A stretch of DNA of 64,000 nucleotides from Podarcis bocagei (taxonomy: Eukaryota), in NCBI GenBank assembly GCA_964188305.1, contig OZ076893.1. The stretch is one strand, 5' to 3'. Positions 10,650-14,639 of the stretch are shown here, one piece after another. A program made the position numbers and the translations under genes. The notes under the pieces are model-generated. The model was not told the origin of the DNA, searched no databases, and saw only the letters and a list, made by a program, of their open reading frames with translations. Positions within the stretch are counted from its first letter, which is position 1. The number at the start of each line of letters is the position of its first letter.

Positions 10650-10873
10650 TGCATGGAAAGCTACATTATGAATGATTTTTACCAAATCTAAACACTAACA
10701 AAAGTTACTCTTGTATTTTCCTATATCAGGAAATAAAGATGGAGGAAGCTATGATCCACACAGGTATCCACACTTTATTATTCTCCTCAGCAGCTTCTTT
10801 CCAAATAATTGCATGACCTGGTCCATTTCGACTAATGCCTGTATCCCGCACATTGCATAGCTTTTGCTGCATG
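10650..10873 (+). promoter_or_regulatory. Cluster of RBFOX (TGCATG) and QKI/branch-point (ACTAAY) splicing motifs flanking the SULF1 microexon
   Basis: TGCATG at 10650, 10810 and 10868; ACTAAC at 10694; ACTAAT at 10831. Confidence 0.6.
10730..10763 (+). CDS. SULF1: SULF1 34-nt penultimate microexon ([12 protein letters not shown]), frame-shifting cassette
   Basis: ctatatcag|GAAATAAAGATGGAGGAAGCTATGATCCACACAG|gtatcc; matches the Sulf-1 GNKDGGSYD motif; branch-point-like ACTAAC at 10694-10699. Confidence 0.93.
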
Positions 10874-12639
10874 CAAGCGCTAATGATGTTCTGCACCTGG
10901 CCACTGGTTTTCACATCTTCCACTTTACATTTAACTTTGCTCACACTGAGACTTCATGCGGCTCATTTTACATTAGTCCTGCTTTAGGAAATTCACTCAT
11001 CATCCTTGTACGGGGGGCTGGGGAGTGGAAGGCACGGCATAGTTCTCTGGAAGTACTGTATGTTGTTTCACGTGACAATAGCATCGCTCGTGTTCATTGA
11101 TGCACATGGGGGGGAATGAGACTGCACCCACTGGTCCCACAACACCTACATGTTTAGCAAACGTATGGAAGGCATTTCATGCATGTGCAGACATATCTGC
11201 AGAAGGCGTCTTCATGCAATTAGGAACCTTGGGACAAGGAGTCTCACCTATGCATAAGTGTCAGGCCCAGAGTCGGCATGGCCAGGCAAATGCTGGGGCC
11301 GCCAGAGATGGCAGCAGTTGCTGGCATCACTTTACACCACTAAGCAAATTGCATACAGCCACTCACCACTTCTGTCCCAAGAATACGGCACTTGAGTATA
11401 AAAATAAAAGGGAATCCCTCTCTGCTGCCTGGCACACTTACTTGGGGACAACCCCGGGGTGCTATGGCGGTCAGTGACCACCAGAATATTTCAAGGAGCC
11501 CTAGAGGACCCCTTGCCCAGGGCTTCTTCCAACCTGCCATCAGCCTTGTGCATGAATCCTGAACACATGGACACCAAGGGCACAGCCAGTGGGTGCAATC
11601 TTGCTCCATCTCAAGCCATTCGGTTTATACAAAGGGGAGTTCATTCAAATCTTTGGTCACTTTTTTTTTATCCATGCCATTCAAATCTTGATTGTTTATA
11701 ATGACTGAACTGGAAGTAGAAGAGAAAAAGCAAAGTGGGATTCAAAAGCGATGTTTATTGATCCAACAAGTTTTGGATATCATAGGGTAAGAAAAGAAGA
11801 AACAGCACATCTAAATGTTGGATCTTTGCTTCTCCAAATTTCCATGAAGATGGTATGGTCCAAATACATTGGATCAATATTTTATCTCTTTTGATTATGC
11901 CAGTTACTTTTTGCTTCTACTTGCCATTCTTTCTTGAGGTTCCCATTTCTGATGCATTTTTCAATGATGGAAGCATTTTTATTGTTGTTATAGGTTGGTC
12001 TTTTCAGAATGTTTCATTATAAATACGCTTATCTTCTTGCTATCGTCAGCAGCAATGAAGCTGATACGGCAATTAAAAATACTTCAGCTCTGCATGACAT
12101 ATCCCCTACAATTGCATAATTGTTGACTTTTAACTCCCCTTATGAATTGGTATTTTGTAAAGTTATGAGTATGTAGGTACTGGCTTTCAAGATTTGGACC
12201 TCCATCAGGATGTTCAGACACTTAGGGCATTTTCACAAGTGATACGAAAAATGTGTTCTTGCATTTCCTGAATCTGTAACCCAAGTGAAAAGTTGCATTG
12301 TCATGTATGTAGTCTGAAGGCACCTCATACTGTAGCATTGTTGAAGCCATGGAGATTTGGACATAATCAGAGCCTGGCTAGACGATCTATCGGATACTAT
12401 GTACTTGAGTGAATCTTCAGAGATGAGGAACCCTGAGAATACTCAAGACTGTTAGAAAAACTTCAGGAAGACATTGGGCCTTACTACATTTGTTTCGAAT
12501 CAGTAAACTTGAATAATTGTTTATTTACTTGGAGTGATCCACTTGTACAAGAATTTGTCTAAATTTCTACAGCTTAAATGCCACTCAGAGCATCAGAGTC
12601 GGAGGTTAAGAACCTGTGACCCTGCAGAAGTTGCTGGAA

Positions 12640-12830
12640 TACAACAAACCACTTTGTACCCCATTTTTCCTCTGGTAGTGTACATTGCCCCCCCCCCACT
12701 GACAACTCTGAGTTAGATTAGAGTGCAAGATAGTGACTGGCCCACAGTCATCCAATGAGCTGAGTGGGGGGGGGGGGTTGAACCTGGAACTCCCCAGCCC
12801 TGGTCTGACTCTTAACCATTACACCACATT
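12640..12830 (-). mobile_element. MIR/L2-type tRNA-SINE remnant (similar copy about 48000-48135)
   Basis: Minus strand reads TGTGGTGTAATGGTTAAGAGTCAGAC...GGTTCAAC (A/B boxes) plus a CORE-like body. Confidence 0.5.
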
Positions 12831-13848
12831 TGCTCAAATCCTGTACAATTTTTCTCATAATGTAGTAGGTAGCTAAATATACCAAATCCCCATGTGTTTA
12901 GAATTAAGGGCAGGTAGTCCAGGTCAAAAGTGTGCATCTGAATATGTATGGGGTAGAGTAAACAATGGCAACAGAAGAGACCTTTGGTGCATGGATACCT
13001 TACTCTTGTTCTTCTGTAGCCTCTCATTGGCTGCATAGCCCTCGTAATTCTGTAGTTGACTTTGCCATTATTGTATAGGACGAACATTTGTTTCCCTTTT
13101 GTTATGTGTATGTTGATTCCCTGGGTATCCTCAATGAAGTGTTCTCAGTAATATTTCTACTGTCTAAATCCACAGGCTGTCTTGTGATATACTAGAAGCA
13201 CCAGTGTTTTCTTATATTGCATTATAAGCACCCCCCTTTTCTGATACGACATCGTTGCCATCTTTTTAAAGATGAAAATGTACAGTAACTTGGCTATGCA
13301 CAACAGTTTAGTAACAGTAGTAGGTCATGGAGCATCTTATTGGAACCACAATGTCGTCATAAGTATTTTACTTCATTACTTTCTTTATTATTATTGATAG
13401 AGTTGGAAAACAAGCAAGGTTCATTGATCCCATATGCACACATTGGATGGTATTCAATGCTGGTCCTACTCAGAGTAGACCCATTGAAGATAGTAAACAC
13501 AACTAACTTAAATTCATTAATTTCAGTGGGTCTGCTGTCCATAGAACTTAGTTGAATACCACTCCTGCTTTGATTGTGGGCTGCTTCTGACTCCTTTTCT
13601 CGATTATTGCTACTTGGATCAAAGTGCCTTTTCCCCATCTATAAGTAAAATATGGGGTGTTTCACTGTGGGTGTCTCCACACTTTCTTAAAAAGAAAAAA
13701 TGTGTGATCTTTATCTTTTTCCATAACCAATCGACATGCTGCAGTTATGAAAAAAAGGAGCTACTGTACTGAGTCAGGACAGTGGTAGCAAACACAATCA
13801 ATACTGAACTTTAGTCTAACTACAGTTTCATTTCTTCTCTTTTAGCAG

Positions 13849-13879
13849 AGGACAGTTATGGCATGGATGGGAAGGCTAA
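13849..13879 (+). CDS. SULF1: SULF1 terminal exon, canonical frame ([10 protein letters not shown])
   Basis: tttagcag|A GGA CAG TTA TGG CAT GGA TGG GAA GGC TAA; typical Sulf WxGWEG C-terminus. Confidence 0.95.
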
Positions 13880-14639
13880 GTTGCCAATCTTCATGGAAAA
13901 TGTCAACTGGCAAGGACTGGAAGATTTGTACAGTGTGAATGAAAGTTTATATGAAGCCAGAAATGACTACAGACTTGGTCCTAATGACTGGACAAATTAC
14001 TTGAAGGATGTAGATAGAATCTTTGCACTGCTGAACAGTTACTCTGAGCAAAATGGAGGAGCAAAGACTCAGGCTACTTATGCCAGTGGGTACTTGGATG
14101 AATCATCCACACCATTTGCCTTGCTAGATATGAGCTCTGCTGAATCAGACGAAGGTTCAAGTTGGTTGACAGCCCAAGAGGCCCAGCCTATTATGCCTAC
14201 AGATTTGGGGAAACTGGCTTTGAGCGCTATTATGTTAAGCCAGGGGAGCAAACCTGAATTAAGCAATGATATTCCTGCAAACGTGAGTCCAAACCTACCA
14301 CACTGGAATAGTCACCAAGCCGACGCGTGGCTGGAGACCAAAGAACCAGTTCATATTGAGACGGATTTCAGTGGGAATGACTTGACAGAGCTTGAGTCTA
14401 GCCATAGCTTCACCTTACAACCCAGTAACATTCTTCAGAAAGACTCAGCCCAAGACAGTGACTCTGCAGAAGATATTTTTGAAGAGCAGATCTATCTTCC
14501 CATGAATGCAGGGGCAATCCACCAGTTCATCATGGAGCATAAAACTGAGAGGGCGTTGAAAAAAAGGGAACATTTTCCAAATGCTTCACAGCGTCTAAGT
14601 GTAGAAGGCAGTGCCTCATCTCCACTCTCCTCAGTTTAG
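13849..14639 (+). CDS. SULF1: SULF1 terminal exon, alternative frame: 263-aa acidic C-terminal extension used if the 34-nt exon is skipped
   Basis: Joining 8526 to 13849 gives G|AG GAC AGT TAT GGC ATG..., in frame with the 258-aa ORF 13863-14639 (stop TAG 14637-14639). This is the longest ORF in the window and lies in non-repetitive, moderately AT-rich DNA. Confidence 0.75.

Follow-up and report, generated by a model that had tools for sequence, protein, structure and literature searches.

SULF1 edits heparan sulfate 6-O-sulfation and tunes Wnt, FGF, BMP and other signalling. The terminal exons of the gene lie on the plus strand of a 64,000-nucleotide (nt) stretch of genomic DNA from the lizard Podarcis bocagei (GenBank assembly GCA_964188305.1, contig OZ076893.1), which is referred to throughout, at its full length, as the window. 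The subject here is the last of these exons, which is open in two reading frames: one gives the short canonical end of the SULF1 protein, and the other a long acidic C-terminal tail that is entered when an upstream exon is skipped.

Terminal exons and reading frames of SULF1

The following elements define the two ends of the protein.

8403-8526, plus strand: 124-nt antepenultimate SULF1 coding exon, preceded by ag and followed by gt, starting in phase 0 and ending in phase 1
10730-10763, plus strand: 34-nt penultimate microexon, preceded by ag and a good polypyrimidine tract and followed by gtatcc
13843-13848, plus strand: NAGNAG tandem acceptor (tagcag), of which the upstream tag moves the exon start to 13846 and adds one residue
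13849-13879, plus strand: dual-coding stretch, in which the canonical frame stops and the tail frame reads EDSYGMDGKA
13849-14639, plus strand: sequence that encodes the tail in the long isoform, with 263 residues and a TAG stop at 14637-14639

The original prediction, made from the letters of the window, had described the phase-1 end of the first of these exons, the 34-nt exon, an acceptor for the last exon at 13849, the stop of the canonical frame and a second frame open to 14639, and all of them are present in the window as described. The 124-nt exon is 100% identical to that of P. raffonei. Among seven squamates the microexon shows a single variable position in each of two species and is otherwise identical; its 5' splice site (CAG-gtatcc, the hyphen marking the exon end) lacks a G at position +5. 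The last exon begins at 13849, directly after ttttagcag. When the microexon is included, the canonical stop (13877-13879) follows 21 residues after the 124-nt exon. When it is skipped, the junction reads ..KGLDT-EDSYGMDGK.. and the frame stays open until the TAG at 14637-14639, giving 263 new residues; in the exon joins built from the window the long protein exceeds the canonical one by 242 amino acids (aa). Both stops lie in the last exon, so that neither mRNA is expected to be a target of nonsense-mediated decay, as had been proposed for the skipped transcript. The earlier description of a dual-coding terminal exon applies to 13849-13879, where DSYGMDGK is almost unchanged from skate to mammals. 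It does not extend downstream, as the sequence beyond 13879 is coding for the long isoform and 3' untranslated region (3'UTR) for the short one.

From stop to stop the tail frame spans 274 codons and, as claimed, is the longest open frame in the window, ranking first of 6777 in a six-frame scan, in which the mean is 17.9 codons and the runner-up has 250. By chance, about 1e-3 frames of this length would be expected per window on a geometric estimate. The nearest stop in this frame 5' of the acceptor is a TAG at 13812-13814, which sits within the polypyrimidine tract; the acceptor is thus essentially where the open frame begins. When the upstream tag of the tandem acceptor is used, the readings become TAEDSYG in the long form and HSRGQLW in the short form. 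The joins made from the window reproduce exactly all four annotated lacertid C-termini (1113, 1112, 871 and 870 aa), and the tandem acceptor accounts for the pairs 1113/1112 and 871/870. The X1 and X2 isoforms annotated in RefSeq/Ensembl for P. muralis, P. raffonei, Lacerta agilis and Zootoca vivipara share with the window the junction ..KGLDT(A)EDSYG.. and the four C-termini; no structural difference separates them from it, and the tail DNA is 97.5-98% identical to that of the three loci compared. In one Zootoca isoform X2 model (P0195, 895 aa) the intron that follows the microexon is kept and gives the reading ..DPHRYPHFIILLSSFFPNNC..; from 10764 onward the window is identical.

The tail frame can be reached by a second route. 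The 124-nt and 34-nt exons each leave a remainder of one when divided by three, so that skipping either one enters the tail frame, and the microexon is stop-free in both the canonical and the tail frame, in the latter reading EIKMEEAMIHT. A newt X1 isoform (P0061) and a giant panda model (P0170) skip the 124-nt exon and read the microexon in the tail frame (..DPYQ-ELKMEEAMICT-EDNYG.., hyphens marking the joins). The equivalent route in the window, with the 124-nt exon skipped and the microexon kept, gives EIKMEEAMIHT-EDSYG.. and is open.

The introns flanking the microexon carry the following conserved elements.

10518-11052, plus strand: conserved intronic island around the microexon, 83-84% identical over about 520-550 nt to Pogona and Anolis
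10650-10655, plus strand: TGCATG, RBFOX-type, about 75 nt 5' of the microexon, invariant in 7/7 squamates
10694-10699, plus strand: ACTAAC, invariant in 7/7 squamates
10810-10815, plus strand: TGCATG, about 47 nt 3' of the microexon, invariant in 7/7 squamates
10868-10873, plus strand: second downstream TGCATG, invariant in 7/7 squamates

The island is the only long part of both flanking introns that can be aligned to Pogona and Anolis, the remainder being mostly unalignable, and between 10580 and 10913 the mean column identity among the seven squamates reaches 94%. Conserved (U)GCAUG elements lie within about 200 nt of the microexon, as is characteristic of RBFOX-regulated exons. Flanks conserved in this way are the usual signature of a regulated alternative exon, which points to regulated choice of the microexon.

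Long isoforms in other vertebrates and in the literature

A phmmer search with the tail against 1.84e9 representative proteins returned 35 matches, of which 25 have E-values below 1e-10. Among these are two full-length Sulf-1 proteins whose junction (..KGLDT-EDNYG.., the hyphen marking the join) is exactly as predicted, one from Ascaphus (911 aa) and one, isoform X2, from Amblyraja radiata (1120 aa). Over 261 residues, the tail of P. muralis isoform X1 (XP_028592577 / A0A670IE04) and that of the window are 98% identical; identity is 83% to Rhineura, 77% to Pogona, about 55% to birds, about 45% to mammals and 38% to skate, and the homology to P. muralis, Rhineura and skate runs from end to end. 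A second search, with the tail of newt isoform X1 within its full-length protein as the query, gave at least 169 protein clusters, from skate to primates, which bears out the earlier suggestion that the isoform is ancient and may already stand in automated annotations. The best 120 of these 169 clusters are nearly all named extracellular sulfatase Sulf-1, most of them as 'isoform X1/X2', and for some species the long Sulf-1 is the sole model among the matches listed. The clusters include fish and amphibians (skate, sturgeon, coelacanth, frogs, salamanders and caecilians) as well as amniotes (turtles, crocodilians, many birds, lizards, snakes, marsupials and placentals, including several primates). 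Among 19 long models that were checked and that keep the 124-nt exon, 18 have ..CNPRPK.(L).. joined to (A)E/G-D-x-YG..; the remaining one, a caecilian model, has the junction ..KGLEA-ENYG.., again hyphenated at the join.

An origin of the tail from a transposon or a foreign gene was considered and rejected, in agreement with the original prediction, as the homologues found are all tails of SULF1, apart from two that belong to the last exon of SULF2. NYAP_N was likewise discarded as a family for the tail: the Pfam match is sub-threshold (E 0.024, 14 bits against a cut-off of 38.6) and was taken as chance.

Transcript evidence comes from an RNA-seq contig in Logan (L001, SRR33136232, 4251 nt) that encodes a continuous 1115-aa Sulf-1 and is closest to the Suncus etruscus model. 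Its alignment to the 124-nt exon stops at 3106, the exon end extrapolates to 3111, the tail exon starts at 3112 and the microexon is absent. The contig is thus one mammalian cDNA that joins the 124-nt exon directly to the tail exon.

The same event has been published for mouse. Preussner et al. define a class of 'splicing-accessible coding 3'UTRs', and their Table S1 lists the mouse Sulf1 event, comprising the 124-nt exon, the 34-nt exon and the last exon, as annotated and supported by RNA-seq, and gives, next to the canonical end, a frameshifted end that reads EDSYGMDGKVSQ..LEGSASAPVISA (Preussner et al., 2020, Genome Biol 21:186, PMC7392665). Their Methods give Sulf1 primers for reverse transcription PCR (RT-PCR) that flank the penultimate exon, and a proteotypic tail peptide, SNPRLSLEDWTNYLRAVYR, is listed for mouse brain lysate in Table S2 (PMC7392665). 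Lizard SULF1 resembles the mouse event in its exon sizes (124 and 34 nt), in its orthologous tail and in having both stops in the last exon. To belong to the class, a gene needs a penultimate exon whose length is no multiple of three and a last exon that holds both the canonical and the new stop, and skipping has to add at least 20 residues, at least 10 of them past the canonical stop. In the window the penultimate exon measures 34 nt, the canonical stop lies in the last exon, and 263 residues are new, about 253 of them past that stop, with the new stop also in the last exon. However, the class is typically proline-rich and destabilising and was studied within mammals (PMC7392665), whereas the SULF1 tail is about 260-300 aa long, acidic, not proline-rich and conserved across jawed vertebrates.

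The isoform that had originally been predicted, longer than canonical SULF1 by roughly 240 aa and arising when the 34-nt exon is left out, is therefore found in the annotated X1/X2 pairs, in the cDNA contig and in the published mouse event. The same sources show that the tail is not 'hidden', as it had been called: annotated in the closest relatives and reported for mouse (PMC7392665), the isoform is already known and not new. Other splice variants of SULF1 and SULF2, described by the Dhoot laboratory, lack exons 6-8 and 18, or correspond to quail Sulf1B. They resemble the long isoform in arising by alternative splicing of the same gene, with functional consequences proposed. They differ from it in being shorter, in lacking exons of the catalytic or hydrophilic domains and in leaving the penultimate microexon and the 3'UTR frame uninvolved. 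As far as the accessible text of the experimental SULF1 papers goes (the Dhoot variants; PMC13405426), these use the canonical form of about 870 aa and shorter variants. Among the literature found on SULF1 splice variants and the microexon, the genome-wide study alone (PMC7392665) covers the event, and no study of tail function was found. To judge from these searches, five points are apparently undescribed: how deeply the tail is conserved, that selection on it is specific to one frame, where its motifs lie, that a second splice route leads to it, and that SULF2 has a counterpart.

Selection on the tail and its anatomy

DNA of three lacertids (Zootoca, Lacerta agilis and Podarcis raffonei) was compared with the window. 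The 791-nt tail is 97.5-98.0% identical to each, with zero gaps; the adjoining 2 kb of 3'UTR have 9-14 gap openings and an identity of 92-98% that varies with the species and the segment. Farther out, in Rhineura, Pogona and Anolis, the frame runs open from the acceptor for 264-268 codons, up to the homologous stop. Between squamate families, pairwise Nei-Gojobori (NG86) ratios of nonsynonymous to synonymous substitution rates (dN/dS) are 0.22-0.48 in the tail frame versus 0.6-1.4 in the shifted frames. The codon model GY+F3X4 (IQ-TREE, seven squamates) gives an omega of 0.465, with twice the log-likelihood difference to omega=1 amounting to 29.75; under the same model the shifted frames give 1.60 and 1.14. 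A homology search and dN/dS among orthologues had been proposed as a check in the original prediction; between squamate families the frame is open and the ratio is below 1. The tail is under frame-specific purifying selection in squamates, which agrees with its being translated. Over longer distances, all tail indels across vertebrates preserve the frame, and the position of the tail end and several motifs are retained from skate and teleosts to mammals despite the fast rate at which the tail evolves.

The tail has an isoelectric point of 4.4, 41 Asp and Glu residues against 17 Lys and Arg, and no Cys; with 14 Pro in 262 residues it is not proline-rich. Its motifs were counted in an alignment of 38 sequences, from skate to mammals, which also served as input for AlphaFold2 (AF2). 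Three segments stand out.

13908-14060, plus strand: N-terminal tail module, residues 20-70 (NWQGLEDLYSVNES..DWTNYLKDVDRIFALL), predicted helical, with an NES sequon at N30
14364-14396, plus strand: DFSGNDLTELE, tail residues 172-182, with an acidic cluster, an aromatic residue and S-G-N-G/D; candidate glycosaminoglycan attachment or binding motif
14604-14639, plus strand: C-terminal EGSAS-PLSS motif and stop, conserved in motif and in stop position

AF2 places helices at tail residues 20-26, 31-34 and 44-70, with predicted local distance difference test (pLDDT) values of 62-73, and leaves the remainder disordered. Seven tail residues are invariant (L26, W47, K52, F58, P142, G175 and E180). 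The NES sequon at N30 is present in 32/38 sequences and an LPNFT sequon in 22/38, and the short conserved motifs comprise NDIPE, F-S-G-N-G/D-L-T-E-L-E and EDIFE.Q.YLP. Within the Ser-Gly motif, S174 is conserved in 37/38 sequences, and G175 and E180 in all 38. The position before S174 is occupied by F, I, V or Y, and the 14 positions before the motif hold two to six acidic residues, at least three of them in 37/38 sequences. A Ser-Gly dipeptide with an acidic cluster and an aromatic residue, in a secretory protein, is the pattern expected of a glycosaminoglycan site, here as a sequence pattern only. At the C-terminus E252, G253 and S254 are each at least 90% conserved and are followed, in most of the 38 sequences, by a final 5-10 residues.

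Origin and possible role of the long isoform

Taken together, these data are very probably explained by alternative splicing that switches the frame of the last exon and replaces the final 21 residues of SULF1 with the 263-residue acidic tail. Inclusion of both the 124-nt and the 34-nt exon would lead to the stop at 13877-13879 and the canonical form of 870/871 aa, whereas skipping of the microexon or, less commonly, of the 124-nt exon would shift translation into the +1 frame, up to the TAG at 14637-14639, and yield the form of 1112/1113 aa. The tail would be a real protein segment inherited from early jawed vertebrates, made of a short helical module and a long acidic disordered region. It would pass into the secretory pathway attached to the C-terminal subunit of the sulfatase, which it lengthens. 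The choice of the microexon may be regulated through its conserved, TGCATG-bearing flanks, and the tail may act in glycosaminoglycan attachment or matrix binding.

Several observations weigh against this explanation. Lacertid pairs differ at only 16-20 positions and their dN/dS values are noisy (0.25-1.04); with so few substitutions, these values do not demonstrate constraint within lacertids alone. The catalytic core changes several times more slowly than the tail, with identities of 79% for the tail and 92% for the core in Pogona, and of 42% and 74% in skate. The confidence of the AF2 prediction is low (mean pLDDT 49), and a Pfam scan finds no family that matches the tail. Transcript and peptide support comes from mammals (L001 and mouse), and the mouse peptide is a single identification that is silent on how its frame was reached. 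Lastly, several mammalian contigs hold only truncated tail open reading frames (ORFs), while other mammals keep about 270 tail codons. The truncated ORFs, of 58-196 aa, were seen in mammal-like contigs (P0007, P0010, P0011, P0020, P0027, P0028, P0032, P0034 and P0035), and may stem from decay in particular lineages, from splicing within the last exon or from faulty assembly.

A different account would have the tail translated separately, as a protein of about 29 kDa that starts at an ATG of the microexon (MEEAM..) or at Met5 of the tail, from the canonical mRNA or from a short transcript starting near the last exon; the tail would then be an overlapping gene and not an extension of SULF1. The canonical mRNA is indeed open in the tail frame through the microexon and offers two ATGs. 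Many database ORFs begin there (MIHTED.., MEEAMSPTE.., MTYTED..), and stand-alone 'uncharacterized protein' entries exist in UniProt for Ficedula, Otolemur and Gopherus. However, those ORFs were called mechanically on assembled contigs, the canonical reading KDGGSYD would fix the ATGs in any case, and translation would have to start about 2.6 kb past the start codon of SULF1, where no internal entry is known. The tail carries no signal peptide of its own, yet it has N-glycosylation sequons and a Ser-Gly motif typical of secretory proteins, and curated pipelines and one cDNA attach it to SULF1. Separate translation is thus improbable. Programmed +1 ribosomal frameshifting on the canonical mRNA near the end of the SULF1 ORF would reach the same frame, but is hardly credible: nothing specific speaks for it beyond the fact that both frames are open over 10730-13879, no slippery site or stimulatory structure turned up, although no search was aimed at them, and for the splice routes there is a record in a cDNA, in annotations and in the design of the mouse RT-PCR.

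The long isoform could also be real as a transcript and yet be a tolerated by-product of mis-splicing, unstable and functionless, with the conservation reflecting constraint on the 3'UTR as RNA. A surveillance reading has been offered for many such extensions, and many 3'UTR-encoded tails are destabilising (PMC7392665). The weak 5' splice site of the microexon, the mostly disordered AF2 model and a lacertid-only dN/dS that is not clearly below 1 fit this possibility. RNA-level constraint, however, does not predict change biased towards third positions, and omega is below 1 in the tail frame only, against 1.1-1.6 in the others. Indels preserve the frame across vertebrates and the stop keeps its position; the protein motifs have persisted for more than 400 million years, whereas neutral intron is already unalignable among squamates; and the tail is not proline-rich. 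A functionless by-product is therefore quite improbable, marginally more so than separate translation, and a spliced, functional extension of SULF1 is preferred.

Given that the tail has been kept since early jawed vertebrates and that the flanks of the microexon are deeply conserved, the tail likely changes where SULF1 sits or how it is modified. SULF2 offers a comparison. A SULF2 transcript ending in ..LKDGSYEQYRGQLWEGWEG (contig L008, positions 1-1117, SRR21676446) contains, in its last exon, a +1-frame ORF of 91 codons, the first 85 residues of which are 39% identical to the helical module of SULF1 (pairwise E 7e-18). A second SULF2 contig from a different sample has an ORF that is 77% identical to it and terminates at the same stop, after ..AVRNTGL; the proteins concerned are P0031 and P0033. 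This homology suggests that the module predates the duplication that gave rise to SULF1 and SULF2, and SULF2 may hold a frame-switch isoform of its own, or the remnant of one.

Human SULF2 bears chondroitin sulfate at Ser583, in EDQDDKD-GG-DFSGTGG of the hydrophilic domain, while SULF1 is stated not to be modified in this way (PMC13405426, a preprint); the accessible part of that preprint does not mention the long SULF1 isoform. The SULF1 tail resembles the SULF2 site, ..EDQDDKDGGDFSGTGG, in having an aromatic residue followed by S-G-x-G/D after an acidic cluster, and in belonging to the C-terminal subunit; the tail motif is DFSGNG in most species and DFSGND in the window. It differs in its location in a C-terminal tail and in its less dense acidic cluster, and it is known here from sequence. 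Conceivably, the tail is an ancestral proteoglycan-type module of the Sulf proteins, in which the serine of F-S-G-N-G/D would be xylosylated and bear chondroitin or heparan sulfate, with the homologous 84-residue +1-frame ORF of SULF2 as a remnant, but this is a tentative and rather doubtful proposal. If it were true, SULF1 would acquire, whenever the microexon is skipped under regulation, the kind of glycosaminoglycan modification that is constitutive in the hydrophilic domain of SULF2, and microexon choice would control the extracellular retention and the activity of SULF1. Tail function becomes a testable question through the comparative evidence, the mapped motifs, the additional splice route and the related ORF of SULF2.

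Apart from SULF1, the window holds an ORF on the minus strand (22098-22502) that resembles the C-terminal end of the OATP family (PF03137) only weakly, with an E-value of 0.0096 that does not reach the cut-off; in view of mammalian synteny we take it to be probably the last exon of a convergent SLCO-type neighbour. Long overlapping ORFs occur on both strands at 32550-33302 (250 aa on the minus strand and 210 aa on the plus strand), neither with a Pfam match. A run of 142 N, an assembly gap or mask, extends from 62012 to 62153.

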